Below are positions 1,173-35,300 of a DNA stretch of 64,000 nucleotides, one piece after another (within the stretch, counting starts at the first letter, position 1; each line of letters opens with the position of its first letter). The notes under the pieces were generated by a model, which was not told the DNA's origin, did no database searches, and saw nothing but the letters and a program-made list of their open reading frames with translations. The DNA comes from Macrostomum lignano (Eukaryota): contig NIVC01001242.1 of assembly GCA_002269645.1 (NCBI GenBank), forward strand, positions 215,954-279,953, written 5' to 3'. A program made the translations under genes and the position numbers.

Positions 1173-4100
1173 CTAAGCAACGCCGAAATGAACCGATTTC
1201 GAGCGTCGACGAGCAATCAATCGGCTGCGTTCGGTTTCGCCAAAGGCTCGAATTCTACGGAATAGCCAGTAGCCCGCGCAGAGCAGCAGGCACAGAACGT
1301 ACAGGCCGAGCCAGTAGAACCTGCGGCAGTGCGGATGGCCTTACGGTGACTTCATAGATTGGGCAATGGAGGATAACATTATAGCTAGTCCTTAGGGTGT
1401 GTCCCAGTTCCAGGTGTGGCTGAGCATAGGATGTGTCTCAGTTCCAGGTGTGGCTGAGCATAGGATGTGTCTCAGTTCCAGGTGGGGCTGAGCATAGGAT
1501 GTGTCTCAGTTCCAGGTGTGACTGAGCATAGGGTGTGTCCCAGTTCCAGGTGTGGCTGAGCATAGGGTGTGTCCCAGTTCCAGGTGTGGCTGAGCATAGG
1601 GTGTGTCCCAGTTCCAGGTGTGGCTGAGCATAGGGTGTGTCCCAGTTCCAGGTGTGGCTGAGCATAGGGTGTGTAACAGTTCCAGGTGTGGCTGAGCATA
1701 GGGTGTGTAACAGTTCCAGGTGTGGCTGAGCATAGGGTGTGTAACAGTTCCAGGTGTGGCTGAGCATAGGGTGTGTAACAGTTCCAGGTGTCACAGTGTC
1801 TCACAGGGCATACCTGGACACAGCCAGAGGCTAACACACAGGTGTCTCACAGTGCATACCTGGACACCAGACAGAGGCTAACACACAGGTGTCTCACAGC
1901 GCATACCTGGACACCAGCCAGAGGCTAACACACAGGTGTCTCACAGTGCATACCTGGACACCAGCCAGAGGCTAACACAGGTGTCTCACAGTGCATACCT
2001 GGACACCAGCCAGAGGCTAACATAGCAGACGCGGCCGTCGCTCTCCCGCACGGCCAGGTAGCCATAGGCCACCTCCAGAGTGCCCATCCGGTAGGAGCAG
2101 GTGGGCGAGCCGATCTCATACACTATGCCATCAGTGAGGGTAAACTTTGCCGAATCAAGCGGCTCAGTAGCGTAGGGTCCACCGCGCTTATCAGGATAGG
2201 GCGCCATAGTCTCGGCGCCGGCGGGTGACCAGCAGCCGTCGCAGCGCAGAGCGAATGCCCGATGCCTGTGACCGGTGATGACCAGGTGAGGCCGGAGCAG
2301 GCGCAACAGGGGTCTAAACTGGGTTGGCCGTTGGGTAAGCAAATTGGCGTGATTGGCTAGGATGCGAAATCCGGCCGACCCGGTCTCCGGCGTGTCTGCA
2401 ATATTGCCGATTTATACTACTTAGTAAGTAGCTTAAAATACTCCGCGTTCGCTTCAATATTGGTGGTCGGTTGGCTGTCGTGCTTTTCATGCACCCATTA
2501 GGGTCATCCCCCCCCAAGGGACAGAGATTGTACATGCCTGACGATTAGAAAGTCAAAGGTCGCTGTACATCCTGTGTGAGCGTGTAAGAGTGCTCAGTAC
2601 ACATACTAAAACAACTACAATAGATTGGCCACTCAGGCATATATTACTTAGTAAAACAGCTTTCTACTTTCAGTTCAGTAGCAAAGAATACATTAGCATT
2701 TTATAAAAATAAAGGCAGCTGAAATGACTTTGATAAGTTTAGAAGCCCAGCAAGCTTACAGGCGTAAACAGCTTGCTAATTGGTTCAGCAATAATGTACA
2801 TTAGCCAGTCCACTAAAATGTACGTGGCAGCTTTAGGCTGGAATTCCGAGAAAGGCAATAAAAATTGAGGTGGGGCGGAGGGAGGTGGGTAGTTTGGAAA
2901 GGCGCGGTTGGAGGGTTTAAGCTGGGGGGGGTAAGAGCCAATAAATGAGCCTCGGCTTTAAAAGTGCATTAGAATGCTCCTGTTTAACTTACTACTGAAC
3001 TGAAAGTAGCTAACACGCCAATGAGCTGAGTGGCCCATCTAGTCTAGTCTAGTCTAGTTATTCTAGTGTTTGTGAACGTTGTAGGACAATGTCACCGATG
3101 ACACCACAACCCTCCCTGCGAATATTTCTATCTAACTTTTAGAGATCTTCCCATGCCCAAATGAATTTCTCCCAGGCGGCTTACTAGGCGCCAGGTGAGC
3201 GTAGGCGGACGCAACGTGGCGTTCGATCTCCCGCTGACAGCGAAACGCATCAGCGTAGAAGCGCAGCCACAGCATCCGCATGGACTGGCCGGCCTTGTCC
3301 GAGCCCTCCAGCCGGCCGAACTGTCTCTCGTAGTCGGCCACCCGGCCGGAGTTGACCGGCTCGGCCTCGCCGCCAACGTCATTGTCGCCGGCCAAGATGA
3401 GCCAGCGGCGCTTCGGCCAGAGGAACAGGCCGCGGAATCTGGCCATGTAGTCGGACAGGGCAGCCGGCGGCGCGGACAGGCCCTCGTCGATGAGGTCGCC
3501 GGGAAACAGCACAGTGGAAGGCTTGGCGGCGCTCAGTGCGGCGGAGTAGCCTTTGAAGAGGAACCTGCGACGGGCCATGGATTAATAAACTCTACTATAT
3601 TTATGGACCTGAGCTGAGGGATCAAAGCCTCCACCAGCTTACATGTCAGCGTCCCATCTGGTCAACCAGCCGAGCGCCTGGCTCTCGTCCCGATAGCCCT
3701 GAATTTGCGGATCCGACGCAATTAGAAAGGTGACGTCTCCCTCAGGTGAGCCGCTGAAGATTTAAATCAAATATTCATTACTAGCGATATACACACATAT
3801 CCACTTTTAATTGTTCTTATTAGTAGCAAGTAGAGAAATTAAAAGTAAAAATTACAAAAGGGCAATTAAGGTGGGCTAGATAAGGAAAGGCAATTAAGGT
3901 GGGCTAGATAAGGAAAGGCAATTAAGGTGGGCTAGGTAAGGAATATACAAAAATACAATGAAATGTCATAGATACAATAAATTTGCAAAATTCTATACTA
4001 CTCAATGAACAGTAGCTTAATAATAATAGCGCATATGAGGTAGATTGACATAAAGATAAAGTGCGACCCTAGCATCTCAATAAGAAAATGTTGCTTAATG

Positions 4101-4323: not shown

Positions 4324-4416
4324 TGCGGTGTCAGCAGCTGGCAATAGTAAATCTGGTGGTATAAATTACAGCTTCCAGTTGATGGGATAAAAAGGAATGA
4401 TGCAATGCATTAGCTA

Positions 4417-6383
4417 CGAGGTGTATTCTAAGTTCTTTTCGGTTCACCAAGTTATGACTATGGCCTAAACGTTCCTAGGGTTTAAAGCCTCAATCAAGGA
4501 ATTCTAAATCCTACTAGAATGACAACTGAAACAGAGGTGTGGACTTTTTATACAAGATGAGGCTTACTGCGATTGCCACAGACATAGGATTTGTTTGCCA
4601 CTAAGAAGAATCAGCTTCGTTCGCCCTATTTTGTCTTAGCCTGTAAAAGTGACTTTCCTGAAGCCAAGTCTCTGCGTCCTCTGCATGCCAAATAAATGCG
4701 CCGTTTTTTGGCTGCAACTCCGGCAGCGAGTCTGCAACGGCACGGTCAGCGAGGATTTCATTCCACAAGTTTCCGAAGCTGGAAAAATGTTAAAGAGCAT
4801 TTCCCTAGAAGCAACTTTCAAGCCATCGAAGCACACTCGAATTTGCTGTCTTCACTTCACGGAATCAGATTTTATTACTGATAATCCGGACAGCAATGCA
4901 TATCGAAAAAAGAAGCGACACGAAGGTTCAAATCTTGTAAAAAGAAGATTTTAGAGAGGGTGCAGTTCCCATCCAATACAGCACGATCAGCAGGCCATCA
5001 TATTTAACAAAAAGTCCACCAGCTTCGCGATCAGAAAACGCATCGTCGCAACGGCGTCACGAGATTGATGTCGCACGGGTGGAACAACAAGAGAGATTAT
5101 TTTTCCAGTGAAAGAATTCGCTCACTTAATGATTTGGTCGCTAAGTTTTCGAAAGAGAAGAAGCCGTCCGGATTTGCTTCGCATCAATCAGCAGACACTC
5201 TCAGCATTATGCTCATACGCTCGTAGCTAATGGTCTATCTCCAATGATCAAGAGTTCCTTGCCTCAGTTTGCAACTAGTGTTTGAGCAGCGAACCTTTCT
5301 ATCAGCTACCATTCAATTTTTTGGCCCGGCTGAGCTGAATCATTTTCAAAAACAAGACGTTCGAAGCTTGATGAAGTTTCAGTTTTTGCAAGGAGACTGA
5401 GCAGACAGTTCGAAAATGGTACCGGCTGTTTGCTGATGGAAGAGAGCGTTGAGGACATTGATCGCTCTGGAAGGCCGATGACTGACTGCAACCAACGAGA
5501 CTGCTGTGAAGAAAGTGCAAGAGCTCCTGGATGATGATCGGCGACGTACTTGCGAAGACTTTGGAGAAGACGTTGGTGTGTCAGTAGGAAGCGTCCACAC
5601 CATTCTGACTGAGCGTCTTCACCTGCAGAAAAAGTTCTGCAAGTGGGTGCCACACCTGCTGACAGGTGAGCAAAAGATGCAGCGAACTGTAGCTTCAAGC
5701 AGCCACCTGCTTCGGTTCCATCGAGAAGGGGAGGATTTTCTATCAAGATTTGTTGCTGGAGACGAGCCGTGGGCTTACAGCTGGGATCCTGAGACAAAGT
5801 CCCAGTCTGCCGAATGGCTTCCAGCACATTCTCAAAGACCTCAGGTCATCAGGAAGATCATGCACGTCATGTTTTTTGAATCCCAAGGAATTCTGCTAAA
5901 CTGGGCAGTCCCCAAGGAACCACCATCAATGGGGACTACTACAAGTGGATTCTGCAGAAGTTGCGCCCAGCAATACGAAAGAAGCGCCCTGGTCTGCTGG
6001 AGTCTGGCGTGATCCTGCTGCACGACAATGCACCAGCACATCGCAAGCACAACGTCGTGGAACTCCTGAGCAAATGGGTCTGGGAAGTGATCCTGCAACA
6101 TCCACCCTATTCGCATGATTTGCCACTGTGCGACTTTTCTTATTTTCATCAGTGAAGAGGCACGTTCGGGGCATTCGATTCGACAGCGTCGAGCACATCG
6201 AAGCTGCTTGTAGTCAAGCTGTGTGGTGTGAGTTCCGGAATCAGAGGCCTGGTACATCGCTGGCAGAAGTGCAAAGATATTTGCGGTGAATATGTTGAGT
6301 GTCAGAATCATGTTAAACAATCTAACAGTGTTTTCATAGTTCCAGTGATTTTGTGTTCAGTTTTGTAGGGCACCGAAAAGAGC
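4417..6383 (+). mobile_element. Decayed mariner (DD34D-type) transposon with internal THAP-transposase fragment
   Basis: Left end TA|CGAGGTGTATTCTAAGTTCTTTTCGGTT. Transposase relic ~5350-6200 with DRSGRP, WVPHLL, GDEPW, HDNAPAH and HPPYSHDL..CDF across frameshifts and stops. Partial right TIR ACCGAAAAGAGCT at 6372-6384. Confidence 0.8.
4685..5290 (+). pseudogene. THAP-domain N-terminus of a P/Galileo-like transposase, frameshifted
   Basis: Joining frames gives MPNKCAVFGCNS...ISFHKFP...FKPSKHTRICCLHFTESDF...REGAVP (C2CH THAP signature plus AVP-like box), followed by a decayed basic/coiled region. Confidence 0.7.
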
Positions 6384-7994: not shown

Positions 7995-9046
7995 GAAGAC
8001 AACAATTCAGCTGACACAAACTGACTGCCGACCCTAATCCTAACCTAAACTCTAACCTAAGCCCTAACACAAACCCTAATATAAACCCTAACACAAACTC
8101 TAACCTAAGCCCTAACACAAACCCTAATATAAACCCTAACACAAACTCTAACCTAAGCCCTAACACAAACCCTAATATAAACCCTAACACAAACTCAAAC
8201 CTAAGCCCTAACACAAACCCTAATATAAACCCTAACACAAACTCTAACCTAAGCCCTAACACAAACCCTAATATAAACCCTAACACAAACCTAACCTACA
8301 CTATAACACAAACCCTAACCTACACCATAACACAAACCTAACCTACACCATAACACAAACCCTAACCTACACCATAACACAAACCCTAACCTACACCATA
8401 ACACAAACCTAACCTACACCATAACACAAACCTTAACCTACACCATAACACAAACCCTAACCTACACCATAACACAAACCCTAACCTACACCATAACACA
8501 AACCTAACCTACACCATAACACAAACCCTAACCTACACCATAACACAAACCCTAACCTACACCATAACACAAACCCTAACCTAAACCCTAATAACACAAA
8601 CCCTAACATAAACCCTAATAACACAAACCCTAACCTAAACCCTAATAACACAAACCCTAACCTACACCATAACACAAACCCTAACCTAAACCCTAATAAC
8701 ACAAACCCTAACCTACACCATAACACAAACCCTAACCTAAACCCTAATAACAAAAACCCTAACCTACACCATAACACAAACCCTAACCTACACCATAACA
8801 CAAACCCTAACCTACACCATAACACAAACCCTAACCTACACCATAACACAAACCCTAACCTACACCATAACACAAACCCTAACCTACACCATAACACAAA
8901 CTCTAACCTAAGCCCTAACACAAACCCTAATATAAACCCTAACACAAACCTAACCTACACTATAACACAAACCCTAACCTTAAACATAACACAAACCCTA
9001 ACCTACACCATAACACAAACTCTAACCTACACCACAACACAAACCC
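7995..9046. repeat. Intronic minisatellite, 24-bp core unit made of the exon end plus donor
   Basis: Minus-strand unit GGGTTTGTGTTATGGTGTAG|GTTA; the exon ends ...CCAGGGTTTGTGTTGTGGTGTAG|GTTAG at 9027/9026. Confidence 0.85.
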
Positions 9047-9928
9047 TGGAGACCACAGCAGAACGGTGGTCTCCTTCATGACGGTCTCCGGCACGGCCTC
9101 CAGCTGGCTGTCCAGGGTGTACAGCCACACGAATCTGCTGCCGTCGGAGCCGAAGCGCAGAGCGGTGAACTGCTGGCCATCGATCAGCCCGCCGACGTCC
9201 AAGAAGGCGTCGGCCTCCTCGTCCGCGTCGCTTCTTCGTTGTCGCCGGTGTCCTCGAACTCGGCGGGTTCAGCTGCCTCGCTGGCGACCTCGCTAGCAAC
9301 TTCGAATCCCCATTCGTCCACTTCCGGCTCGATAGTTAATTGATCTTGGCTCAGCGGAAGCGGAAGAAGCAGAAGCTTTAGAAGCCGGCGGGTCTCGGCG
9401 AATTGATTATTGCAGGCGTTTTGGGCGCCGCAGCCGCCGGGATCAGTACGGAGTCATCAAGGTTGACCGGGTCGCCCGGGTAGTACATCATGCGGCCGAG
9501 CATGTCTTCAACGCGCAGGGCGCCCTCGGCCACCAAGCTGGCTTCCAGAGTCTGGCACTGAGCTGGCAGAGCAGTGCCAGATTGCTCGGCCGCCTTGCGC
9601 CAGAAATAGTTGCGCTCGGTGCCGCGCGGCTGTATCAGGCTTCGCGTGACTGCTAGCAGATCGGCGTAGTCAGATGGATCAGGCGCTGGCTGCTTCGATG
9701 TACAGACGAGATTGACAGGTTCTGCGTGCGCTGTTTCAACGGTTCCTCAAATGCCTCAGACCGTTGTCGCGACCTGGGCGGCGACGGGCCCAACCGGGAC
9801 TGCACCGGAGGGCGCCGCTCGGACTGTATTGACTGAGTCGACGATGACGAAAACAAGTTCGACTGCGCGGCTCGAGGATTAGCGGCGAAGATGAAACTCT
9901 TTCTATCGCCACCGCCGGCACCGGCGCC

Positions 9929-10100
9929 TCTGCTATTAAAGCCGTCACCACCGCCACCTCTGTTGCTAAAGCCGTCACCACCGCCACCTCTGTTGCTAAA
10001 GCCGTCACCACCGCCTTCTCTGTTGCTAAAGCCGTCACCACCGCCACCTCTGTTGCTAAAGCCGTCACCACCGCCACCTCTGTTGCTAAAGCCTCCGCCG
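9929..10100 (-). repeat. Coding 30-bp repeat (GFSNRGGGGD x ~6)
   Basis: Period 30 (e.g. TGTTGCTAAA at 9961 and 9991), in frame within the LOTUS ORF. Confidence 0.9.
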
Positions 10101-10694
10101 ACGCCGCCTCTGTTGCCACCTTCTCCGCCGAATCTACAATACTGATAAGACGGCCTCTGGCCGCGAATGGCGCCCCGATGCGCCGGCAGAAAGGCGGAAG
10201 CGGTGCTAAACGACGAAACAGACGAGGCAGACGACATTGAGCTGCGGCCGCGCAAGCTAGCGGAGCTGCCACTGCCAAGAAGCGAGTTGCCGCGACTGCC
10301 CCTGCCGCCTCTTGCGGAGGGGCGCTTCTTCTTTTTGCTCCTCTGCTTAGAAATCAGCGCCTCAATGTGGGAGCTGCGCTCAGAGCCGACACCGTGGCAG
10401 ACTACTTCGCCGTTTACATTGGACAGGCGCACAACCTCCGGAATGCTGCGAAGGTAGGCAGTCAGGTTTGGATAGCCCTGTGGGTCCAGATTGGCCGAGG
10501 CCAGCTGACGATAGTCCCTCATCAGCTGACTGAGAGGGACGCCCTCCTTAAAGGAGATTAAGACGCATTGTAAATTGATTTTCTGATCATCGGCCATTGT
10601 GTTAGATAAGGAAAAAACAGTGATGGAGCCTGTAAGTTACAATGCGGAATGCTTCCTTGTAACAGTTGCACTGGAAATGGATGAACTGATGAAC

Positions 10695-10984: not shown

Positions 10985-11871
10985 TACTTAATCTAGTGCT
11001 TGATCTCAATCCCAATGCTTGACACAAACCCACCAATTAAAGCTTGGATTCGGACGCATTTCATCCGATATTAGCAGAAAGCAACTCATAAAACACAAAA
11101 GAAACTTGTAACGCTGCAGACCCCCAATAAACCGATCGTGTTGTATTAGCCTGACTTGAAGAACTTGTATTTTTAGTAGCATTGCTTGCCTTTGTAAACT
11201 GCGTTGGAAATGGTAAGCAAAAAATACGAATATTGTTTGTTTGTTTGGTGTTTATTTGTTTGTTTATTATGTTTATTGTTTGTTTAGGCTTGTCATAAAC
11301 AGTCACACGTGACAAAAATGTACTTTAAACCCGCGACTGGCATAGCAACATATTGGCAATATGAAGCGTTTTATAATTTGTTATTGATAGTTATTTTAGA
11401 CTGTTCAAAATGATGTTTTTTTAATACCATACATGTAGGCATATAGGCAGCCCCCAGATTCTGAATAATCAAAGATTTAGAAAAGAACGGAGTTAAGCCT
11501 ATTGTAAATAAACAGATCCCGATTTCATAATATATTTATATATATAAATATACTAAACTAAAGAAAGGGAAAATAGGAAGAAGCGAACATAGCGATAGAA
11601 ACAGCTTGTCATTCACTGGTTGCAGAGAATCAAGAATGTCCATTCAGAGACATCCTCGCTCATCTCCTTGGCCGTCTCCAGTTCGGCGGCCTCGCGTTCG
11701 CGACGCTCCTCGGCGCTCTCCAGATCCTCGGTGTACTTCTTAGGCGGGTAGCGCATCGCGCGGACGGACTGCTCGCGGACCTGAGATGAGCCGAGGGGAG
11801 AGCTTTGTATGGGATTTATAGGGAGCATAGGCAACTCAAGGGAGCCAGAGTGATGATGCTAAAGCATCAGA

Positions 11872-12020
11872 GAGGAACCAAGATGATGATGCTGAAGCAG
11901 CACACAGAGAAACCAAGATGATGATGCTGCAGCAGCACACAGAGAAACCAAGATGATGATGCTGCAGCAGCACACAGAGAAACCAAGATGATGATGCTTA
12001 GGATGCTTAGCAACACCAGA
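11872..12020. repeat. 35-bp minisatellite, ~4 copies, in the last PSMD3 intron
   Basis: ACCAAGATGATGATGCTG(A/C)AGCAGCACACAGAGAA, period 35. Confidence 0.85.
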
Positions 12021-12266
12021 GGGGTGATGGTGTGAAGAGCAGGCAGTACACAGGTGCCGATCAATCCGGAGGCCTCACCTGCAGGCAGAAGTTGATCCGC
12101 TGCTGAAACTGGTCAGCGGGCTCGGCAGTGCCGTACAGGTCGGCGGTCTCCCGGCTGCTCAAGGTGCCGGCCTTGTGATCGATGGTGGCCTCGATCACGC
12201 CGTCGCGAATAGCCTTGGCGGCCACGTATTCGGCTTCCTCGGCCGAGTCCAGCTGCAGCTGCAGCT

Positions 12267-15200
12267 ACAAACATTATTGTTGAGCGAAATCGCTTTTGGA
12301 CCCGGCAGCAGAAGGAGGGAGAAGCATTTTCTGATTTTTTGATGGAATTACGAGACCTCATGAGAACTTGTGCGTTTTGTCAGCATGCCGACGATCTATT
12401 GAGAGATAAAATTGTCCTGGGAATACGAAACCCGGACACAGTTAAAAGACTATTAGCCGAGCCAAAGCTTAGCTTATCAGAAGCGGTAACCATTTGCCAA
12501 GCTGAAGAAGCGTCTATCAAACAGCGGGACGAAATTTGCAAGTCAGCGAGCCTGAATGCGCTAAAAATATCTGCGTACAGGACGACTAAGCACCCGGGAT
12601 TCCTAAAAGGACAACCCCAGACGAGCAAAAGTCAATCGTGTGGCTACTGCGGTAAGCAAAAGCACTCGGGTGAGACATGTCCGGCCAGAGACAAAACTTG
12701 TCGTCGCTGTGGCAAAAAAGGGCACTTCGATAGAGTGTGCCGCTCGAAAAATACACTAAGCAAAAAACCCAGTGAATCGTCGCGAAAAGGAAGCATTCAA
12801 TCGCTAATAGCCATGTTGCAACCTGATTGTCCCGTAGTGAATGTACAAATCGGAGGTGTCACACTAACAATGATGCCCGACACTGGCTCAAATATAACCG
12901 CTATCAGAGTAGAAGACATGCAAAAGCTGGCAAGGAGGCCACGAATTTTAGAAGCCGCTGATGGTCCAACAGCCGCGAATGGACAGTACATGAAAGTAAT
13001 AGGAAAGTTTCGCGACTCAATCTCGATCGGTGAGACCAAGATCACAACAGACATTTACGTTCTTGATCGCCTGACGGTACCGGTCTTGTCATGGAGAGCA
13101 TGTGTTGATTTGGGAATAATTCCCAGGTATTTTCCTCGACAACAAATCAACTCGATCGCCACAAGAACTGCTACAGCAGAAGACCTAATCAGCGAATTCC
13201 TGGCTGTATTCGATGGGATAGTAAGACCAATGAAGGGTGAAGCATTTTCGATCAAGCTTCGTGAAGACGCTCAACCTTTCTCCATTAAGACACCAAGGAG
13301 GATACCGTTCCCATTGTACGAGCATTGGATACGGATGTGCGTCGACTTTCGGGAATTAAACAAATATGTTATTCGACCAAGGTACCAGTCTCAGACGCCA
13401 TTGGAAGTCGTTGCAAGCACAGATGCTAGTCGCGCCAAGTATTTCTCTGTAGTTGACGCCTTGAAAGGATACCACCAAATACCGCTGGCTAAAGAAAGTA
13501 TGCACCTGACAACGTTCATCACGCCGTTTGGTCGTTATATGTTTAGGATGGCACCATTCGGTATAAGCTCTATTTCTGAGTATTACAACCAGAGACTTGA
13601 CGACACTTTTCAAGGACTCAAGGAAGTTCGGCATGTCGTTGATGATTGTCTGGTCGCAACTTCTGACGAGGAATCACACGTACAAGCGGTTCGTCAGTTT
13701 CTGCAGCGCTGTCAAGACAATGGGGTAGCATTAAATAAAAAGAAGTTTGCATTTTGCAAGACTCAAATTGATTTTGCCGGATTTCGATTGTCAGCTGATG
13801 GCTACAGCATTGATCCGGAGCTTATGAAAGCGGTCAGACAATTTCCCACTCCAAACAATATTACCGACCTACGCGCGTTCTTTGGCCTAGTCAACCAAGT
13901 CGGCACGTTTACGTCAGACATAGCAGAAGTCACAGCCTCGTTAAGGCCGCTGCTGTCCGAGAAGAATTTATTTCAATGGGGAGACGAACATCAAACGGCA
14001 TTTGAAGAAGCCCGTCGCCGCCTGGCAATTGCTCCTACACTGGCCTATTATGACCAACGCAAGCCAACAGCCCTGCACACGGATGCATCTCGACTTAAGG
14101 GAATCGGATTCTTGTTCAAACAGCAGCAGACCGATGGAAGCTGGCGTGTGGTTCAAGCTGGCTCGAGATTCATTTCAGAGACCGAGTCACGCTATGCCAT
14201 GATCGAGTTGGAACTGTTAGCTGTGGTCTGGGCGACTCAGAAGTGCAGACTCTTCCTTGAGGGGCTTCATGAGTTTGAAATTGTAACCGACCACAAGCCG
14301 CTGATACCAATCCTGAACAGTTACCAGCTGGATCAAATAGAAAATCCCAGAATTCAGCGTCTTCGAGCGAAACTGAACCGCTACGTATACAAGGCGCGAT
14401 GGGTAAAAGGCAAGGACAATGCCGACGCAGACGCTCTGTCGCGAGCACCAGTGGACAATCCGACTGCACAGGATGAACTGGGCGAGTCTGCAGATTTTCA
14501 ACTTACCAATCAGCTCTTAATGCACCTCGAATCAGCAGAGCTGGATCCTATTCTGCAAAGCGTGCGACAAAGCACAGCTTCTGATCAGGAGTTGCAAGAC
14601 CTGATGCAATATATTCGGGATGGCTTTCCCAATGACAAGGCAAACTTACCTCTTTGCATTCGGTCATTTTGGCATGTAAGAGACAAGCTCTCAGTCGACG
14701 ACGGCATCATTCTATGCGGATGTCGTTGCGTCATACCACATGCAATGAGGAAGCAGATTTTGACGGACTTACACGCAAGTCACCAAGGTCTGCACAAGAC
14801 AAAGCAGAGAGCAAGGATGGTCGTCTACTGGCCTGGCATCGATCGGGACATTGAAAATACAGTCAAGCAGTGTCAGTCCTGTCGGGAACATCTACCATCG
14901 CAGATCAGGGAGCCGATGACAACCCAGGACCAACCGGATCGATGTTTTCAACACATACATGCAGATTTCTGCGAGCATGCCGGCAAGAAGTTCCTTGTGC
15001 TCGTGGATGCATACTCAGGCTGGCCAGCGTTCTGTCATTTCGGTGATCGAGCACCCACGTACAAGCTGATAAACGCTTGCCGCGAATTCTTTTGCCAGAC
15101 AGCTGTACCGGAGAAATTCTGTGCAGACTGTGGGCCACAATTTAAAGCACAGCCGTTCGTTAATTTTCTACGTCGCTGGGGTGTGAACATCAAATACTCA

Positions 15201-16056: not shown

Positions 16057-16102
16057 TAGCCGGCGTTTTATTGCCTGTGACTCTATACTGACTCTATACT
16101 GG

Positions 16103-17050: not shown

Positions 17051-17083
17051 CATCTTACAGAACCAAGCTTGGGCGCGAAGTGG

Positions 17084-22600: not shown

Positions 22601-23300
22601 ATGCTTGCTGTCTGGGGGATGCTTGCTATCTGAGGGATGCTTGCTGTCTGAGGGATGCTTGCTATCTGGGGGATGCTTGCTGTCTGGGGGATGCTTGCTG
22701 TCTGGGGGATGCTTGCTATCTGAGGGATGCTTGCTGTCTGGGGGATGCTTGCTGTCTGGTGGATGCTTGCTATCTGAGGGATGCTTGCTGTCTGGGGGAT
22801 GCTTGCTGTCTGGGGGATGCTTGCTATCTGGGGGATGCTTGCTACCTGGGGGATGCTTGCTATCTGGGGGATGCTTGCTGTCTGGGGGATGCTTGCTGTC
22901 TGGGGGATGCTTGCTATCTGGGGGATGCTTGCTGTCTGGGGGATGCTTGCTGTCTGGTGGATGCTTGCTATCTGAGGGATGCTTGCTGCCTGGGGGATGC
23001 TTGCTGTCTGGGGGATGGTTGCTATCTGGGGGATGCTTGCTATCTGGGGGATGCTTGCTGTCTGGGGGATGCTTGCTGTCTGGGGGATGCTTGCTGTCTG
23101 GGGGATGCTTGCTGTCTGGGGATGCTTGCTGTCTGGGGGATGCTTGCTGTCTGGGGGATGCTTGCTGTCTGGGGGATGCTTGCTGTCTGGGGGATGCTTG
23201 CTGTCTGGGGGATGCTTGCTATCTGGGGGATGGTTGCTATCTAGGGGATGCTTGCTGTCTGGGGGATGCTTACTATCTGGGGGATGCTTGCTATCTGGGG
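19698..23300. repeat. 18-bp minisatellite, ~200 copies, abutting the PSMD3 acceptor
   Basis: TCTGGGGGATGCTTGCTG and variants; the minus unit carries CATCCCCCAG|ACAG and runs straight into the exon. Confidence 0.95.
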
Positions 23301-23374
23301 GGCACTAGAAGGGGGCACTAGATTGCTAGTCAATACATTAATAACATAGATAGTTACCAATCAATCAAACGAAC

Positions 23375-25078
23375 CTGATTGACAGATTTCACAAGTCCAT
23401 CAGAGTACGGATCGCAGCCGCAAATTGTATAAAACGAGAAGAGAGTGTAGCCAGCGAATAGAACAGAATAAAAAGCAGGGCCACACCAGGTACGTTAATT
23501 AGAATCGACCTTCAATGAGTTGAACAACTTATCTGAATTTTGTGCTCAATTAATTGGCCTTCTCTCGCGCGGAATTCTGTTTGGTACGATTAGAGAAAAA
23601 GAGAGGGATAGGAGAGAGGGGGCGAAGAGGGATAGAGAAAGAGGGGCGGAGATGGATAAGAGAGAGGGACTTAGAGGGATAGAGGGAGAAAAGTACGGAG
23701 AGGGATAAGAGAGGGACATGAGTAGTGACTGCCGAAATAGAATATCTCTGCCGGCGAACCTGGAAATATGACGCACTTTTATGCAGCTACTGTCAGTAGT
23801 GTGAGTTTAAGGCACAAATTAATTTTTGTCATAGCTAAATCTAAACTGAATCTCAACTGAATCTCAACTGAATCTCAACTGAATCTCAACTGAATCTCAA
23901 CTGAATCTCAACCGAATCTCAACTGAATCTCAACCGAATCTCAACTGAATCTCAACTGAATCTCGACTGAATTCCAAACTGAATCTCAACTAAATATCAA
24001 CTGAATCTCAACCAAATCTCAACTGGGTTCAACTGAATCTCAAATGAATCTCCAAGGTATGCAAGCCGTGGCTCAACTAAATTGGAACTATTTTGAAAGT
24101 CGATACCATAAAGTTCATGCGTTTTTCACCTGCAAACTGATTAGAATAAGCAGCTCAATGCCGGGAACCCAATACGATCTCTCAGTCAGTTTGCGGACTG
24201 CGTCACCGATAGCAAAATTCGAGTTGATTCGAATTCAAGCACTAAGCGTGTTTATATGCAGCTGTTCTACCTGTCTGTGAATCTCTTGACCGATTATGCA
24301 AATTGGCTGCTTGTTGAGTGACTTCTTTAAGCTGGAGAGGTGTCACCTTGGATCATCAGTTTCCATTAGTAATGAGTTGCTATACTGTCTTTTGACTAGT
24401 TTGAAAATTGACTCAATTTAAACAATTGAAATACGTTAGATTCAGTTGAGATTCAGTTGAGATTCAGTTAAGATTCAGCTGGGATTCAATTAAGATTCAG
24501 TTCAGATTCAGTTGAGATTTAGTTAAGATTCAGCTATGATTCAGTTGAGATTCAGCTGAGATTCATTTGAGATTCAGCTGAGATTCAATTAAGATTCAGT
24601 TGAGATTCGGTTGAGATTCAGCTGAGATTCAGTTGAGATTCAGCTGAGATTCAATTAAGATTCAGCTGAGATTCAGTTGAGATTCAGTTAAGATTCAGTT
24701 GAGATTCAGTTGAGATTCAGCTGAGGTTCAGTTAAGATTCAGTTGAGATTCAGTTAAGATTCAGTTGAGATTCAGTTAAGATTCAGTTGAGATTCAGTTG
24801 AGATTCAGCTAAGATTCAGCTGACATCCACGTACATCAAAAGCAAGCTGTCAGTCTTGTAATCATTACATGACACAAACGTACTACCTAGCAGAGAAATG
24901 GCGGACCAATTAAGGACACAAGAATTGAGATGGCCACCGGTAGCAACTGCAGATTTCGGTTGCCAAGCAGGTACTCTCTGGTAGTTTGTTGCCGGCCGCC
25001 AGTGCACGAGGTGTACACCCCAATAGCAACAGATGACAGACAGATCAAGGCGATAAGGACGTAGTCTATGGGGTGCAT
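23375..25078 (-). pseudogene. SLC5 (SMCT/SMVT/NIS-type sodium:solute symporter) fragments
   Basis: First exon 25078-24887: IDYVLIAL..SVAIGVY..GGRQQTTREYLLGNRNLQLLPVAISILVS..SAISLLG (frameshift). Second piece ~23520-23375: INVPGVALL..SVLFAGYTLFSFY..CDPYSDGLVKSVNQ|GT (frameshift). Intervening and 3' exons not found. Confidence 0.75.
23840..24820. repeat. Two inverted arrays of an 11-bp unit around a ~400-bp spacer (foldback-like)
   Basis: (CTCAACTGAAT)n at 23840-24040 and its reverse complement (ATTCAGTTGAG)n at 24435-24820. Confidence 0.85.
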
Positions 25079-25269
25079 GACGGCGGGATGGAGGAAATTT
25101 TTGGAAAATGTTGCTGTGTCGAATAAGAACCGATCGATTTGTTCAAATATAGAATAGAGTTCTTTCTGTATTGCGAGTGCGCGTGGTTATGCTCGTAGTA
25201 TTAGGCTCGTAGTAGGTACGCTCTGATTGGCTCCATGAGAGTAGTGCAGGACCAAAACTCTATCAAAAC

Positions 25270-26315: not shown

Positions 26316-29300
26316 ATGTCTACAGCAAATGAGTCTGTAAAATGGCAGGACTTATTAGAAAAAGAGTTTGACAAATCCTTTGCTGATCTAGAGCTTCTAT
26401 TGCATAAAAATCTATCATCTAACAAAGAGTTATATACAAATATAACAAACTATCTAAATACAATCTGTAGCACATTTTCTCAATTGAACCAGCGTGCCTT
26501 AACAATTTTCTATAATAATGCAAAGCTTGAAGTAAGTTGCCTTGCTTTTAAATTAATTTTTTTATTATCGTATATTTAAACTATATAGTGTAGGTCAATG
26601 CCACTAGGCCTAGGCTTATAGCATTATATAATATATATTTAGGCCTATGTTATAAATAGTTGCCTAAATATTTTTAATATTAAGATTTACTAAAATGCTT
26701 ATTTACTACACATTTTAGCATCTTAACAATAGACAAGTAGGCTTTATTGTTGCTTTTATACTATAGTTCAGATTGTATATTAGTGCATACCAAGTTTAAT
26801 ACTGGAATAAATGATGAGACCTCGTTTGTATGCCAGGTTTGTATGAAATGCCAATATAAAAAATTGTCATTTGACACAATGAATTTAATGTTATATATGC
26901 TAGTATATATCTTGATATAGGCCTATGCTCATACATGCGCAACTGCTGGCCGACCTAGCCGATCTGGCCACCGTAAATCGTGGCTGACCAGGGGTAAGTC
27001 GCAAAATTGAGTCAACCAAAAACAGAAAAACACAAGAACCAAGAAAGGCAAGAGGAAAGCAAAAGAAAGTTCAGTTCAGGGAAAATGGTGAAGCAAAAGA
27101 AAAACAATTCGCAAAAGAAGCAAACTAAGTTGTAAAAATAATCAGGTAAGTCGCAAAAAGGATCAGGTAAGTCGCAACAGGAATCAGGTAAGTCGCAACA
27201 GGAATCAGGTAAGTCGCAAAAGAAGCAAACTAAGTCGCAAAAAGGATCAGGTAAGTCGCAAAAGAAGCAAACTAAGTCGCAAAAAGGATCAGGTAAGTCG
27301 CAAAAAGGATTAGGTAAGTCGCAAAAGAATTAGGTAAGTCGCAAAAAGGATCAGGTAAGTCGCAAAAGGGTTAGGTAAGTCGCAAAAGGATTAGGTAAGT
27401 CGCAAAAGAATTAGGTAAGTCGCAAAAAGGATCAGGTAAGTCGCAAAAAGGATCAGGTAAGTCGCAAAAGGATTAGGTAAGTCGCAAAAGAAGCAACTAA
27501 GTCGCAATAAGAGGGAAGTAAGTCACAATCAGAGGCAATCAGGGGGTAGTAGGTGCAAGTGTGGCAAGAGAGCAAAAACAGAATAGAAGCCTTCAACCAC
27601 AGACAAGATCTTTGAAATCAGAAGCCCGCGTCAACAGTTTCCCATTGATTTCTTAAACTCTGGAGCAGGGGTTGGCAAACTCTGGCTCGCGAAGCCCCTC
27701 TATCTGGCCCTCGCCCCTCGGGTTCTTTGAAACTTCCTAACTACGAGTAGCAAGGTTGGTGTCTCTTCAACTCTCATCTCTCTCTTCTTCTCTACCTTGC
27801 CTCCCCTCTTCTCTCTCTCCCCCTTTTCCCTCTTCTCTCTCCTCTCATTTTTACTCTCCTCTCTTCTCCCCCTTTCTCTCTACCCTTTCTCCTCAATGCC
27901 CTCTTCTCTCTTATCTTCAGCAAAAATATGTGCGTATTTTCTTACTTCAAAGTAGAGGGAATAGAAGATTAGAGATAAGCAAACAGAGGAGAGGCGAGCG
28001 ATGCGATGGGAGAAAAGATAGAAGAGGAGAGAAAAGCTGAGGGAGGAAAAAGAGATGAGAGAGAAGAGGAGATGAGAGGAAAGAGGAAAGAAAAGATGAT
28101 GGATGAGATCAGAAGAGAGGAAAGAGGAAAGAGGAGAGAGTAGATGAGAGAAGAGAGGATAAAGAGGAGATGAGAGGAGAGTGAAGAGAGGAGAGATGAG
28201 AGAGTAGAAAAGAGAGGAGAGATAAGATGAGAGAGTAGAGTGGAGAGAGACGAGAGGGAAGATAAGATAAGAGAGTAGAGTGGAATGGAGAGAGACGAGA
28301 GGAGAGATAAGAATGTAGAGAGGAGACAGAAGAGATAGGAGAGGAGAGGAAAGAGAGGAGAGAGGAGAGGTAAGAGAGAAGGGATAAGGGATGAGAGAGA
28401 AAAGAAAAAGAGGATGAGAAGATTGAGGAATGGAGAGAATTTGCAAAGGCCTCAAATCTTAGTTTAACATGCATTACTCCCATCTTTGCCTTTTTCCTAA
28501 CTGTTAACAAGTTTTTGTTTGAGCATGACTTCAAATGTAGAATCTATGCAAAACTAGTTCCGGGAATTAGAATTCAGTGGTTTAAAAATCTGTGGGTTTT
28601 CATAGCTTGTATCTCTACTGGATTCGTATTCTGCATCTGATGAGCCATCTGAATCAGGGCTCTCATCTTCCATGCCAAATCGTCTAGCAAATCGTTCTTG
28701 AGCTATAGGTCACACTGTATTCACTTCAATTACTTCTGGACATTCATGAATCATGACTTTTGTAGTATGCTCACTACACTGTACTGACAATTTACCAATT
28801 GCTTCATGCCGCCACTAGATGACATACTGATTAGCTGTTATAAAAACGCGGAATCTGCACGCAGCACTAATTAGCTGGCGAGGCATTTAGCTTTAAAAAT
28901 ATGGTCATAGTTACTCCTGCCGTTTACCTAAAGTTTTTGCTTGGCTCTTTCATAGGTAAGTCGCATTTTTTATCGAAAACTAAGTCGCACGGCCAGCGTA
29001 ATTTCAGAAGTTGCGCATGTATGCCTATGCTGAAAAATGGTAAGACCTTTGTTATATGCCAGCCTTCTAAACTATGGCTTTTATAAATATATCTCATATA
29101 AGTCACTCTTAAAGATATGATAGCTATGTTTATAATGCAAAAACTTATAGAAATGGCAACTGTCTTTAATAGTGCCTAGGTTTATACTTATAGACATGCC
29201 TACTATTTATATAATTAGAGTCTATAAACATGGCAGCTATGTCTTTAATATAAAATGCATATTATATTAGTGATGTATTGTCTGTGTCAATAAAGTCTAT

Positions 29301-32300
29301 ATAGTGCCAATGGCCATGTTAATATTAAATGGGTTTATACATAGACTTAAAGATATAGAAGGTGGCTATGTTCCTAATATAAAATTCGTTTGGCATTAAA
29401 GTCAATGGCTATCTCCTTATTGCCAAAATTTAAAGCCATGGTATACTATACGCAGTATAATACTCAACCATGGGGATACAATTACCTTCCTTTTAGGTAG
29501 AGACAAAAAAAAGGCAAATGGTATCTAATCCAATTTTTGCCAAAATAGAAAGCCATCAATTTGCCCTTCCTTCCTTTGCCTTCGTTGACTTTCTAGAATC
29601 TATCCCCTCAATAAACTTCTAGTTATGCTATTGAAAATAAATAAAATGGCTAGTTAAGAAATGTCTATTCAATGTTTTTTTATACTTGTAATACCTTTTA
29701 TATTCAATTTATCTTTTCTTATATCTAAAGCTAAGTGGGTAGACTGTTAGGTTTGATGCATATCTTCTCCTAGACAGCTGGCAACTCAAATATAAATGAA
29801 AGTTAATTTATATTAACTTAGTTATAACTGAAGAAGTTAAAGGTTCTTTTCATAGGCTCTGAAATTTGCAACATTCATTTATTTACTTATTGCTTTACCC
29901 TTTACCAATGAAATCAAAGGCTTTCAATAGTCCTTTAAATCACAGTAAGTAAGTGGCCAATATTAGCAACCAGATGCAACATATATATATATACCCTATA
30001 GATATGAAGCGCAGTCTGGACCTAGGCATTATTAGAGACAAGGTATATTTATATCTCTACAAACTTTATCAACAACTTTATTAACAACTTACCTTGTGTA
30101 TATCCAAATCAATGGCAGAAATCTAAGCTAAAGAATACTATAGTAAATATGGTAAAATGGGTATCTATAATGGCTATATTGGTATATATAAAAGCTAACA
30201 ACTGCTCTTATGCCTTTGACAATGACAATATAATGTAGTCTTTAAATCTATCAAAATACTTATCTCTATCCTACCCTTTATATTTCTAAACCTCTGACCT
30301 ATAGAAGCTTTTAATCTATAAACTCTATGTTTAAAATTAACTATTGAAATGTTTTAAAATCCACAAAATCCCAAAATGCTCCAGAATATTATTAATTATA
30401 GAAATATGGAACTGAAATTACCTAATGTAAGGCTGTTCAGTCCAATGACTGGGATGGGGGGTTGCCAAACAGCCCTCAATTACCCCAGCTAATTTTGGCA
30501 CCCAATTTTACAGCTGGGTGAACTGAAGCAATGTAGAGTTAAGTGTCTTGCTCAAGGACACAAATTGTTCCAGTGGGATTTTAAGAATCAAAACCCTGAC
30601 CTTACAGTTGTAAGACTGGCTACAACCCTCTATCACAAAACACTGAGCTTATAAGAAGGCTCTAAATTGTCTGTAAAGTTATACAATAAATAGGTAACAT
30701 GCATTTACTATAATATTAACTAAAATGTACTTTCAATAAAAGTAACCACGCACCAGCCTCTAAATAAAAAGTAAAACTTGATGAATCAGTCTGCCATAAT
30801 GGTATTGTAAAAAAGACAACATTTTTTTAGGCTCAGCTGGTATCCATGCGCACAGACCTGGCCTCTGCTCAGGCCGCAGCTGCAAGCTCTGCTGGTGCAG
30901 CATCAGCCAAAGCTTCATCATCACTAGCAGATGTTGATGCCCAGCCTCCGCAGCCCGCATCCTCAGACTCTGCCAAGTCTGAGATTCTGAAATTCGAACG
31001 GGATATTGTTGTGAATGAGAATGCCGAGCTCAGACGGTACTGCCTGGCTCTGCAGACTGAGCTGTATGCTGCCCGCCTGACTGCCAAATACCTCAATAAG
31101 GAGCTGGCAGGTCGTGTGCAACAGATGCAGCTGCTGACTGCCAGCAGCAATGGGACTGGTCTGGGTGAGTGCCAGCCTTACTGGGCCAGCCTCCCAGATC
31201 CTCAGTTGCTGGGCCAGCCTGCCAGATCTTCAGTTGCTGGGCCAGCCTCCCAGATCCTCAGTAGCTGGACCAGCCTGCCAGATCTTCAGTTGCTGGGCCA
31301 GCCTCCCAGATCCTCAGTTGCTGGGCCAGCCTCCCAGATCCCCAGTTGCTGGGCCAGCCTCCCAGATCCTCAGTTGCTGGGCCAGCCTCCCAGATCCTCG
31401 GTTGCTGGGCCACCCTTCCAGATCCCCAGTTGCTGGGCCAGCCTCCCAGATCCTCAGTTGCTGGGCCAGCCTCCCAGATCCTCGGTTGCTGGGCCAGCCT
31501 CCCAGATCCTCAGTTGCTGGGCCAGCCTCCCAGATTCTCAGTTGCTGGGCCACCCTTCCAGATCCCCAGTTGCTGGGCCAGCCTCCCAGATCCTCAGTTG
31601 CTGGGCCAGCCTCCCAGATCCTCGGTTGCTGGGCCAGCCTCCCAGATCCTCGGTTGCTGGGCCAGCCTCCCAGATCCTCGGTTGCTGGGCCAGCCTCCCA
31701 GATCCTCATCAGTTGCTGGGCCAGCCTCCCAGATCCTCGGTTGCTGAGCCAGCCTCCCAGATTCCCAGTTGCTGGGCCAGCCTCCCAGATCCTCGGTTGC
31801 TGGGCCAGCCTCCCAGATCCTCAGTTGCTGGGCCAGCCTCCCAGATCTTCAGTTGCTGTGCCAGACTCCCAGATCCTCAGTTGCTGGGCCAGCCTCCCAG
31901 ATCCTCGGTTGCTGGGCCAGCCTCCCAGATCCTCAGTTGCTGGGCCAGCCTCCCAGATTCTCAGTTGCTGGGCCACCCTTCCAGATCCCCAGTTGCTGGG
32001 CCAGCCTCCCAGATCCTCAGTTGCTGGGCCAGCCTCCCAGATTCTCAGTTGCTGGGCCACCCTTCCAGATCCCCAGTTGCTGGGCCAGCCTCCCAGATCC
32101 TCAGTTGCTGGGCCAGCCTCCCAGATCCTCGGTTGCTGGGCCAGCCTCCCAGATCCTCATCAGTTGCTGGGCCAGCAGCCTCCCAGATTCCCAGTTGCTG
32201 GGCCAGCCTCCCAGATCCTCATCAGTTGCTGGGCCAGCAGCCTCCCAGATCCTCATCAGTTGCTGGGCCAGCAGCCTCCCAGATTCCCAGTTGCTGGTCC

Positions 32301-35300
32301 AGCCTCCCAGATCCTCAGTTGCTGGTCCAGCCTCCCAGAGTGTCCGTTGCTGAGCCAGCCAGCCTCCCAGATCATCATTGTCTGGGCCAGCCTTTAAAAC
32401 GCATCATCAACTCAAATCAATCCATTTCAACTTTTCATTTTTACATTTCAGACGGTGTCAGCGGTGCTGGCAGCGGAGGCAGCGGCGGCGGCCGTCACCC
32501 GATGGGCCCTGGCGAGCGCAGGCGGCTGTGGTCGCAGCTGGAAGCTGAGATCCGACTGCACAGGTGCAAAACTTTGCTTCGAGCGAGTCGCGGTCGTTCC
32601 GTTGCCAGGTCGGTGAAATCTGCGATTGTCGATTGTAAAGACTGATTCGCCTGACCTTGAGCACAGGCTATTATTAATCTTCCCCGATTCCCCTTAAGAA
32701 TCTCTCCCTATTCCTTTAAGAATCTCTTCCAATTTCCCTTGAGAATCTCCTGCCAAATTCCCTGGAGAATCTCCTAAATTCCCCTTTGAGAATCACCAAA
32801 TTCCCCTTGAGAATCTCCTGCCAATTCCCTTGGAGAATCTCCCTAATTCCCCTTGAATCTGCTGCCAATTCCCTTGGAGAATCTCCCAAATTCCCTTTGA
32901 AAATCTCCTGCCAATTCCCTTGGAGAATCTCCCAAATTCCTTTTAAGAATCTCCCCACCATTCTCTTGAAAATCTCCCCTAATTCCCTTAATAATCTCCC
33001 CTGGATTCCCCTTAAGAATCTCCCCATTCCCTTTGAGTATCTCCCCCTCTCAATTCCCCTCCAGAATCTCCCCCAATTCCTCTTGAGAATCTACCCCAAT
33101 CCCCTTTGATAATCCTTCCCAATTATCCTTGATTATCTCCCCCAATTCCCTTTGAGAAACTCCCCCAATTTCCCTTGATTATCTCCCCCAATTCCCTTTG
33201 AGAAACTCCCCCAATTCCCGTTGAGTATCTCCTCCAATACGTCTCCCCCAATACGTATAGAGAATCTGCCACAACCCCTTGAGAATCTGCCATAATTCTC
33301 CTAAAAAATGCTTCTCGCTACTTTTAGTAGACAAAACTCAACAAAATGCATTTTAGGTTCCTACCAAACAACGGCTTGGCCCCGGGTCAGGAGGAATCGC
33401 TGACCGACTGTTCACCGCGTCAAGTCAGCGTCAGCAAGGATCCCGGTGAAGGCCTTGGCGTGTCCATTGTTGGAGGCCGCGAGCACGGGGCCCCAATTCT
33501 CATTTCCGAGCTGCATCCGGGTCTGCCAGCTGCTCGATGCGGTCTGATTCGTGTTGGCGATGCCATTCTGTCTGTTGACGGAGTGTCGCTCAGAGAGGCT
33601 CGACATCACGATGCTGTACAAGTGCTGAGTCATCTTCGAGAGTCCACTGTGGAACTCACTCTGGTCTTTGTTGCCGATGTTGACCAGCCAGGGAGTGCTG
33701 ATGATGACGAAGTGACTGATGAAGATGAGGACGACCGGTTTGTGGATCTGGCCACTGGATACAGGTGGGTTGTGTCTGTGGGATACAGGTGGGTTGTGTC
33801 TGTGGGATACAGGTGGGTTGTGTCTGTGGGATACAGGTGGGTTGTGTCTGGGATACAGGTAGGTTGTGTCTGTGGGATACAGGTGGGTTGTGTCTGTGGG
33901 ATACAAGTGGGTTGTGTCTGTGGGATACAGGTGGGTTGTGTCTGTGGGATACAGGTGGGTTGTGTCTGTGGGATACAAGTGGGTTGTGTCTGTGGGATAC
34001 AGGTGGGTTGTGTCTGTGGGATACAGGTGGGTTGTGTCTGTGGGATACAGGTGGGTTGTGTCTGTGGGATACAGGTGGGTTGTGTCTGGGATACAGGTAG
34101 GTTGTGTCTGTGGGATACAGGTGGGTTGTGTCTGGGATACAGGTGGGTTGTGTCTGTGAGATACAAGTGGGTTGTGTCTGTTTGATACAGGTGGATTGTG
34201 TCTGTGGGATACAAGTGGGTTGTGTCTGTGGGATACAGGTGGGTTGTGTCTGTGGGATACAGGTGGATTGTGTCTGTGGGATACAGGTGGGTTGTGTCTG
34301 TGGGATACAGGTGGATTGTGTCTGTGGGATACAGGTGGGTTGTGTCTGTGAGATACAGGTGGGTTGTGTCTGAGGGATACAGGTGGGTTGTGTCTGTGGG
34401 ATACAGGTGAGTTGTGTCTGTGGGATACAGGTGGGTTGTGTCTGTGAGATACAAGTGGGTTGTGTCTGTTTGATACAGGTGGATTGTGTCTGTGGGATAC
34501 AGGTGGGTTGTGTCTGTGGGATACAAGTGGGTTGTGTCTGTGGGATACAGGTGGGTTGTGTCTGTGGGATACAGGTGGATTGTGTCTGTGGGATACAGGT
34601 GGGTTGTGTCTGTGGGATACAGGTGGATTGTGTCTGTGGGATACAGGTGGGTTGTCTGTGGGATACAGGTGGATTGTGTCTGTGGGATACAGGTGGGTTG
34701 TGTCTGTGGGATACAGGTGGGTTGTGTCTGTGGTATGCAGGTGGGTTGTGTCTGAGATGCAGGTGGGTTGTGTCTGTGGGATACAGGTGGGTTGTGTCTG
34801 TGGTATGCAGGTGGGTTGTGTCTGAGATGCAGGTGGGTTGTGTCTGTGGGATACAGGTGGGTTGTGTCTGTGGTATGCAGGTGGGTTGTGTCTAAGATGC
34901 AGGTGGGTTGTGTCTGTGGTATGCAGGTGGGTTGTGTCTAAGATGCAGGTGGGTTGTGTCTGTGGGATACAGGTGGGTTGTGTCTGTGGTATGCAGGTGG
35001 GTTGTGTCCGATGCACACTAGTTATTGCTTAACTTAATTACCCTCCAGGTTCCGCATGTACGATGATGAAATGACAACTTGTCATGGAAATCAGTTACGA
35101 AAGAAGTTGAAGAACAAAACTGAAGTCAAACTCCAGCCAAGGTAATTTTTTTACCATTGCAAAAACGTTTTTTTATAATCATTTTGTCTATGCCAGGCTG
35201 TTTTTTTAAGTTTCACTGTGGTAAAAAAATAATCGCAAAATAACAATTCTTTTTTTTCTATTTTCAGCTGTAGCACTCAAGAAGGTAAAGTCTCAGCACA

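Follow-up and report, generated by a model that had tools for sequence, protein, structure and literature searches.

Intronic minisatellites that repeat predicted splice sites in a 64-kb window of the Macrostomum lignano genome

Macrostomum lignano is a free-living flatworm. We analysed a 64-kb stretch of its genome (assembly GCA_002269645.1, Mlig_3_7; contig NIVC01001242.1, positions 215,954 to 279,953 of the forward strand), hereafter the window, in which some introns are made up mostly of minisatellites whose repeat unit includes a splice site of the intron itself. Two such arrays, in intron 4 of GOPC and in the last intron of an MPPE1-like phosphoesterase gene, are confirmed as repeats of predicted donors, and a third, beside a PSMD3-like exon, repeats an acceptor with the support of homology only. 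We consider it likely that these are minisatellites of the 'mirage' type, neutral by-products of a very active birth of tandem repeats in the short introns of this species. A sequence-only reading of the window had proposed five junction arrays, four at donors (GOPC, MPPE1-like, PSMD3 and a LOTUS gene) and one at the PSMD3 acceptor. All the arrays that it described were found by Tandem Repeats Finder (TRF) at the positions it had given; as junction arrays, the GOPC and MPPE1-like examples stand, the 18-bp acceptor array of PSMD3 stands by homology only, and the 22-bp array of PSMD3 does not.

Tandem arrays account for 38% of the window, with ~43 distinct arrays listed by TRF. Exon positions were set from tblastn matches, continuity of phase and GT/AG dinucleotides and, for GOPC, additionally from the length of the annotated product. 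Homologue searches with the PSMD3, GOPC, MPPE1-like and LOTUS sequences as queries did not return the annotated M. lignano proteins of these genes. Positions 56489 to 34091 of the window are 100% identical to a public locus (L002) of the same contig, and two more copies of the region are available, L001 (94–98% identity) and L003. Repeats are reported to make up more than half of the M. lignano genome, simple and tandem repeats 15% of it; extensive near-identical duplicated blocks are present, and the GenBank annotation was built from a genome-guided transcriptome (PMC5730564).

The GOPC gene lies on the plus strand, with exons in our coding sequence (CDS) model at 26316–26531, 30831–31164, 32452–32608, 33357–33764, 35049–35141 and 35268–35373. 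Exon 4, defined by the CDS model and alignment, encodes the PDZ domain (Pfam PDZ, 1e-17) and ends in GGATACAG, the exon–intron boundary reading ...CTGGCCACT GGATACAG|GTGGGT at 33764|33765. A 24-bp minisatellite with the unit GGATACAG|GTGGGTTGTGTCTGTG and ~52 copies (TRF 52.8) occupies 33757–35008 on the plus strand, and its first unit spans this donor, so that each unit is composed of 8 exonic and 16 intronic nucleotides (GT and 14 more). The exact sequence CAGGTGGGT is kept in 37 copies and NAGGT in 49. Of the 1284 nt of intron 4, 1244 belong to the array, and the remaining 40 nt form a unique tail with the acceptor (ccctccag|G) of exon 5, the latter (FRMYDDEM...) being likewise placed by the CDS model and alignment. 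Joining the donor of the first copy to exon 5 yields ...TGYR|FRMYDDEM, and the motif G[FHY]R[YF]R[MLI][YF]D is aligned at the same place in six homologues (from an annelid, molluscs, amphioxus, a shark and an acoel), GGATACAG coding for its G-Y-R.

The six-exon model is an open frame of 437 amino acids, a length shared by the annotated product of the PDZ gene in all three gene copies. The 24-bp unit is in frame and free of stops, and one added unit would insert WVVSVGYR; this would break the conserved junction motif and make the protein longer than the annotated 437 amino acids. With the junction set by homology, phase and annotated length, the array is confirmed as a repeat of what is predicted to be the genuine donor, and the agreement in length across the three copies points indirectly to the exon-proximal donor being used exclusively or predominantly. 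The proposal that junction duplications are tolerated because the exon-proximal copy keeps the frame is supported here: with the first donor, the 437-residue product and the conserved G[FHY]R[YF]R are both obtained, and a neutral model of tolerance, described below, fits the number of junction arrays.

The 24-bp array is also present in both other gene copies of the region. In copy g3 (locus L003), the exon-5 side holds 8.3 units, as compared with 52.8 units in the window, and the product is still annotated at 437 amino acids; the locus as analysed ends before the GOPC exon, so the count for g3 covers the exon-5-side units only. A repetitive insertion of at least 2.8 kb resembling a transposable element (19541–22327 of L003) interrupts a unit of the array in this copy.

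The second array lies in the MPPE1-like gene, identified by tblastn with a human MPPE1 query sequence. Its exons were placed on the minus strand at 4323–4184, 3753–3643, 3564–3185, 2395–1999 and 1320–1173, encoding 391 amino acids. A 47-bp minisatellite with five copies (1792–2022, minus strand; TRF) sits at the donor of the last intron, and CAG|GTATGC is present in register in five of five copies. With the preferred donor of exon 4, at 1999|1998, the final ~23 nt of the exon in the CDS model (GTTAGCCTCTGGCTGGTGTCCAG) open the first repeat unit, which then consists of ~23 exonic and 24 intronic nucleotides. This donor, in phase 2, matches the acceptor ccgcag|G of the last exon (1173–1320, minus strand, phase 2) and keeps the frame into that exon, whose product (FYWLGLYVLCLLLCAGYWLF... 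stop) contributes a C-terminal hydrophobic, putatively transmembrane helix followed by basic residues (Kyte–Doolittle 19-residue maximum of 1.86). The alternative donor at 2022|2021 (TAT|GTTAGC) gives a protein of 356 amino acids without the helix, and the array then starts at the first base of the intron. The GC content at third codon positions (GC3) is 0.60 with donor 1999|1998 and 0.38 with 2022|2021, compared with 0.73 for exon 4. We infer from these features that 1999|1998 is the favoured donor. Because the donor falls inside the array under both readings, it is repeated either way, and on its predicted structure the 47-bp array is confirmed as a junction array. The rest of the last intron is taken up by a 34-bp minisatellite of 11.7 copies (1393–1791, minus strand) that ends 72 nt from the acceptor and does not span a junction.

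The acceptor array is found at the PSMD3 locus. An 18-bp minisatellite (19697–23301, minus strand) with the unit AAGCATCCCCCAGACAGC and ~200 copies (TRF 201), of which 154 contain CCCCCAG, ends with a unit that overlaps the acceptor of a PSMD3-like exon (..SSLVPLRCRLNEAVLLRLAQAYFPGVSPSKDAFLAFLSAASSGSG) at 19567–19701 on the minus strand; the exon was placed by tblastn and a phase check, with its donor CCG|GTGATA at 19567|19566. The last copy stops at 19697 and PSMD3 homology (..SSLVPLRCRLN) begins immediately after it, so that the acceptor, be it CCCCCAG|AC or ACAG|C, falls within the final unit. That the array repeats the predicted PSMD3 acceptor is thus supported by homology only.

The PSMD3 copy itself (11652–19701, minus strand) is, judged from its reading frames, decayed, with an incomplete PCI domain and an incomplete open reading frame (ORF). 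Using as reference the human sequence, checked to be 100% identical to PDB chain 12bm_V, tblastn homology was limited to human residues ~98–135, 151–194, 244–294, 429–485 and 486–528, and no equivalent of the PCI core (human ~330–428) was found anywhere in the window by tblastn with three references, a motif scan or a profile search with all filters off. The exon reading ...LLRSYLMDRLLDQ...ARYQFYLGR has lost 10 residues present in homologues and contains an in-frame TAA, after which it continues in another frame, and ~35 additional residues are lost upstream of it. Its two 3' exons, by contrast, show no obvious damage, nor do the splice sites of these exons. The copy that carries the 18-bp array is probably not under selection; given that the genome is partly duplicated, the presence of a dying paralogue is no surprise. 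Among the PSMD3 remnants there is an open Ty3/gypsy pol frame of 1215 codons (12213–15857, plus strand; protease, reverse transcriptase, RNase H and integrase by Pfam), and a piggyBac-like fragment was recognised by eye at ~16287–16934 on the minus strand.

The 22-bp array of the same copy (17084–18157, minus strand, 48.8 copies) had been placed at a PSMD3 donor. The homologous frame closes with ...FRQICTKM and a stop, and the only homology-compatible donor, AAT|GTAGGT at this point, lies ~30 nt upstream of the first unit; the frame that leads from the exon into the array is without homology to PSMD3. A continuation of the coding sequence into the array (LLLHGSAPES aligned with ELLLGEIPDR) was rejected, the match being too weak (E ~6) and partly made of the repeat. 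By this placement the 22-bp array does not repeat a junction. Of the five proposed examples, two belong to the decayed PSMD3 copy, and of this pair one is off the junction.

The LOTUS array, a telomere-like 24-bp (4 x 6) minisatellite of ~41 copies at 8039–9047 on the minus strand, was said to start exactly at a donor. It does begin 3 nt before the first GT past the LOTUS coding homology, but this donor could not be fixed. The coding sequence resembles an older M. lignano model as far as ...KETTVLL, and the next GT (CCAGG|GTTTGT, 9045|9044) is 3 nt into the array; both 9045 with an acceptor at 7882 and 9031 with one at 7889 are compatible in phase, a strong acceptor at 7991 is followed, whatever the phase, by a stop only a few codons on, and the ORF, if unspliced, reaches a stop after 27 codons of array sequence. 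The unit is composed of four degenerate hexamers (GGTTAG GGTTTG TGTTAT GGTGTA), and TTAGGG occurs 45 times in the 1-kb array as against 12 times in the rest of the window. On this composition the array may have been derived from telomere-like sequence and not from a junction. The intron has a unique 3' tail of 157 nt with its own acceptor.

An older M. lignano gene model, P0175 (UniRef A0A1I8FH85), labelled 'PI3K/PI4K domain-containing protein', fuses the LOTUS C-terminus to the MPPE1-like gene and is likely an annotation artefact. It was considered as transcript support for the junctions of both genes and was not used, being a LOTUS–MPPE1 chimera in shifting frames. In the long first coding exon of LOTUS, a 30-bp repeat of 6.6 copies (9919–10116, minus strand), a multiple of three, forms a coding minisatellite.

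Within the window, the GOPC, MPPE1-like and 18-bp units are confined to their own arrays, and the exonic stretches of 8 and ~23 nt shared with the donor units are, by their sequence, not chance matches. Real exon bases in the units, together with the absence of these units elsewhere in the window, argue that the arrays were seeded in place. In the explanation that we favour, slippage or unequal exchange would duplicate a stretch of 18–47 nt in place, and the resulting pair would then expand into an array. The ancestral introns would have been only ~60–200 nt long, so that a large share of the possible seeds would overlap an exon–intron boundary; a seed of this kind would give a unit composed of the last (or first) exon bases and the splice site. 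The exon-proximal copy would be the original junction, still used by the spliceosome, and the extra copies plain intron, their silence being maintained by positional selection, as is proposed for arrays other than GOPC by analogy with intron 7 of human F7 (IVS7). Seeds entirely within exons would be purged by selection. The expected outcome is a set of introns in which array sequence predominates and in some of which the intron's own splice site is present in 4 to ~200 silent copies.

The sizes of the introns in the window bear on this scheme. Array-free introns measure 76, 78 and 126 nt, and a fourth, of 789 nt, contains an apparent inverted-repeat element (by eye). Leaving aside GOPC intron 1 (4.3 kb), the non-array remainder is 40–390 nt in the eight array-bearing introns with defined ends. 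In our model, a tandem duplication of u nt is equally likely to be seeded at any position of an ancestral intron of length L0; boundary seeds are tolerated and purely exonic seeds are not. Under these assumptions a junction is spanned with a probability of 2(u-1)/(L0+u-1), which amounts to 0.13–0.53 for most arrays. For the 14 arrays in introns with defined ends, 3.3 junction-spanning arrays are expected and 3 are observed (P(>=3)=0.70). Junction-spanning arrays are not over-represented here. Array copy number turns over fast between gene copies, the 35-bp array of PPT1, for example, having 19.2 copies in one and 28.1 in another.

The sequence-only reading had offered, as an alternative, that splice junctions are hotspots for the birth of repeats, through R-loops or spliceosome-linked repair; as a mutational hotspot for minisatellites, co-transcriptional repair would be a further candidate cause. 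The presence of three to four junction arrays within 35 kb speaks for this, as do two further arrays that begin 16–42 nt from a donor. A hotspot is nevertheless not needed to account for the count, as the neutral seed model already yields 3.3 of 14, and most intronic arrays lie 16–213 nt from both junctions. The arrays that had been named as not repeating a junction (28, 23, 34, 35 and 20 bp) are indeed 16–103 nt away from one. Furthermore, array density is just as high in a stretch that lacks called genes (46.5–56.5 kb): the ~10 kb at 46500–56489 are without a gene in the public annotation and yet densely filled with arrays, which are therefore not specific to introns. Taken together, we regard a junction hotspot as unlikely. 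It had also been suggested that array positions be compared with positions shuffled within introns. Shuffling of this kind cannot produce exon-overlapping arrays, and an enrichment would be reported by construction; where introns are short, junction-spanning minisatellites are to be expected by chance, and tests that shuffle within introns only will give false positives.

A coincidence produced by misplaced junctions, pseudogenes or assembly problems, with no real splice sites involved, does describe part of the original proposal. The PSMD3 copy is without a PCI core and has an in-frame stop and two internal deletions, the 22-bp array is off its junction, the LOTUS donor is ambiguous, and the older gene model P0175 of the locus is full of frame changes. 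As an account of the arrays as a whole it is improbable: the place of the GOPC junction follows from homology, phase and annotated length, the MPPE1-like array repeats the donor whichever of the two plausible ones is taken, and the 24-bp GOPC array recurs in two other gene copies.

Least probable of all, to the point that we give it very little credence, is that the repeated sites are functional, serving regulated choice of 5' or 3' sites, recursive splicing or control of splicing rate, with the in-frame 24- and 18-nt units giving protein-length variants. The units of GOPC, LOTUS and PSMD3 are multiples of three and those of GOPC and PSMD3 are open in frame throughout, but the LOTUS frame is open for just 27 codons before its stop. 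The decoy donors of GOPC have the same sequence as the authentic donor, but the 437-residue product annotated in three gene copies corresponds to no extra units, and an extra unit disrupts the conserved junction motif. Splicing from an internal copy of the 47-bp array leads to a frameshift and then a TGA, and copy number varies freely between gene copies. Recursive splice sites consist of a pyrimidine tract followed by AG|GTAAGT, are located in long introns and give saw-tooth RNA coverage; AG|GT is present in the units here, but it is preceded by a tract that is G/T-rich and not pyrimidine-rich as in recursive sites, and the introns are ~1.2 kb. A separate 21-bp array, described below, does have perfect CAG|GTAAGT sites. 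In human F7 the corresponding pseudo-sites are silent (PMC1557585).

Several points weigh against the neutral, mirage-type explanation as we have put it. The MPPE1-like donor is a putative one, chosen by frame, hydrophobicity and GC3, and the LOTUS donor cannot be fixed from the sequence, as several candidates are phase-compatible. The acceptor array belongs to a decayed PSMD3 copy, and its ~200 copies may postdate the loss of selection. Internal copies may be used at a low level. The neutral model, finally, covers 14 arrays in one window and assumes that seeding is uniform and that the non-array sequence left today corresponds in length to the ancestral intron.

The remaining arrays of GOPC do not span junctions as they stand. 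In intron 2 the first base of a 28-bp minisatellite (31181–32393, plus strand) is 16 nt past the donor TGG|GTGAGT. At 31161–31208 its unit starts with CTGGGCCAGCCT, and the adjoining upstream junction reads CTGG|GTGAGT|GCCAGCCT, such that the unit resembles the junction minus its six donor bases. This likeness could be due to chance, or the array could be a former junction array stripped of its decoy donors. A 23-bp minisatellite in intron 3 (32676–33256, plus strand) is separated from the donor by 67 nt and from the acceptor by 100 nt. The 21-bp minisatellite of intron 1 (27141–27507, plus strand) lies away from the junctions and has, on the sense strand, nine copies of CAGGTAAGT and six of TAGGTAAGT, a motif found nowhere else in the window. 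A lone 21-bp unit is found at 26993, 130 nt upstream of the array and directly after a 74-nt open stretch that is bounded by AG and GT and is weakly similar to the start of GOPC exon 2. The stretch may represent a poison or cassette exon that had its donor copied. As a cassette exon of the main CDS (26922–26995; AQLLADLADL similarity, donor GTAAGTCGCAAAA) it was rejected, as exon 1 joins 30831 in frame to give the 437-residue product.

Elsewhere in the window, the exons of PPT1 were placed on the minus strand at 46489–45990, 45407–45317, 45240–45070 and 44219–~44100, and the encoded protein is 99% identical to the M. lignano protein BOX15_Mlig029227g4. A 15-bp unit, AATGCTGTGTTCACC, is found twice (49624 and 62176), as is a 23/27-bp unit, GGTGGCAAATCGGACATCAGGGA (47364 and 59581), and flanks of ~82% identity were noted between 49062–49736 and 61623–62302 and between 51015–51552 and 55666–56203. 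Such recurring units and similar flanks within 47364–63488 suggest mobile or duplicated segments that bear arrays. Remnants resembling a mariner transposase (LHDNAPAH...HPPYSHDL) were recognised by eye only at 5309–6356, and a Pfam scan of one such fragment (5482–6009, plus strand) returned no match. Upstream of PSMD3, at 24890–25186 on the minus strand, an exon resembles by eye the N-terminus of a sodium:solute symporter.

A broader version of the original idea, in which junction copying is a genome-wide mode of intron growth in M. lignano, with arrays born preferentially at junctions or with in-frame decoys used at some level, seems doubtful to us. GOPC isoforms stepping by 24 nt, or a kinetic delay or recursive removal of the array, would be examples, and, if it were true, M. 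lignano would be a natural system in which 50–200 identical sites compete for choice by the spliceosome. With as many as ~50 donors or ~200 acceptors identical to the authentic one, the arrays put positional splice-site choice to an extreme natural test. Transgenesis and RNA resources exist for M. lignano, and the GOPC intron is a ready-made candidate for a minigene.

Tandem duplication of segments containing AG|GT is, in the model of Rogers, reportedly a route to intron gain and sliding, and Zhuo and colleagues are said to have described, in 2007, human introns derived from tandem arrays. The M. lignano arrays resemble the Rogers model in that tandem duplication carries splice signals along, which provides raw material for new or shifted introns. 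They differ from it in that GOPC intron 4, the last MPPE1-like intron and the LOTUS intron keep unique 3' tails (40, 72 and 157 nt, respectively) with their own acceptors. None of the three consists only of a duplicated segment, and the tails indicate that the arrays enlarged pre-existing introns and did not create them.

Closer parallels come from human minisatellites. In F7, IFI6 (6-16), CBS, LMNB2 and PDGF the first monomer spans the exon–intron boundary, and for the 37-bp variable number tandem repeat (VNTR) of F7 intron 7 the most upstream of the identical donors was shown experimentally to be used exclusively (PMC1557585). As in M. lignano, identical pseudo-sites come after the authentic donor in F7 intron 7, IFI6 intron 2, CBS intron 13, LMNB2 and PDGF; a few proximal pseudo-sites are used in IFI6 and CBS. 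The human cases are single loci with 5–26 copies, whereas several arrays lie within 35 kb here and one of them repeats an acceptor.

Junction arrays had been regarded as something new, but beyond these human examples they already bear a name, 'mirages', in amphioxus, where minisatellites span the boundary at a donor or an acceptor, are unstable in length and leave splicing undisturbed, and where a role for them in the origin of new introns has been discussed (PMC3087553, PMC3902484). Full-text literature searches returned no report of a junction-spanning minisatellite for Macrostomum, and the present arrays appear to extend a known kind of array to a new phylum, not to reveal a new mechanism. 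The M. lignano arrays are like the amphioxus cases (Adh3, the globins BflGb6 and BflGb9, troponin C and PGBD5) in that units span the exon–intron boundary and many keep AG/GT. All five proposed arrays are head-to-tail repeats within genes with units (47, 24, 22, 18 and 24 bp by TRF) that fall in the 10–160 bp range of amphioxus. Copy number is unstable in both, between haplotypes in amphioxus and between gene copies in M. lignano, as seen for the GOPC array in g3 and the 35-bp array of PPT1. The differences are that the host is a flatworm and not a cephalochordate, that junction units cover 18–47 bp, and that the arrays sit in a region that is 38% tandem repeat within a partly duplicated genome. 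With copies reaching ~50–200, it is mainly the copy number (~50 identical donors, ~200 acceptors) and the local density that set these arrays apart.

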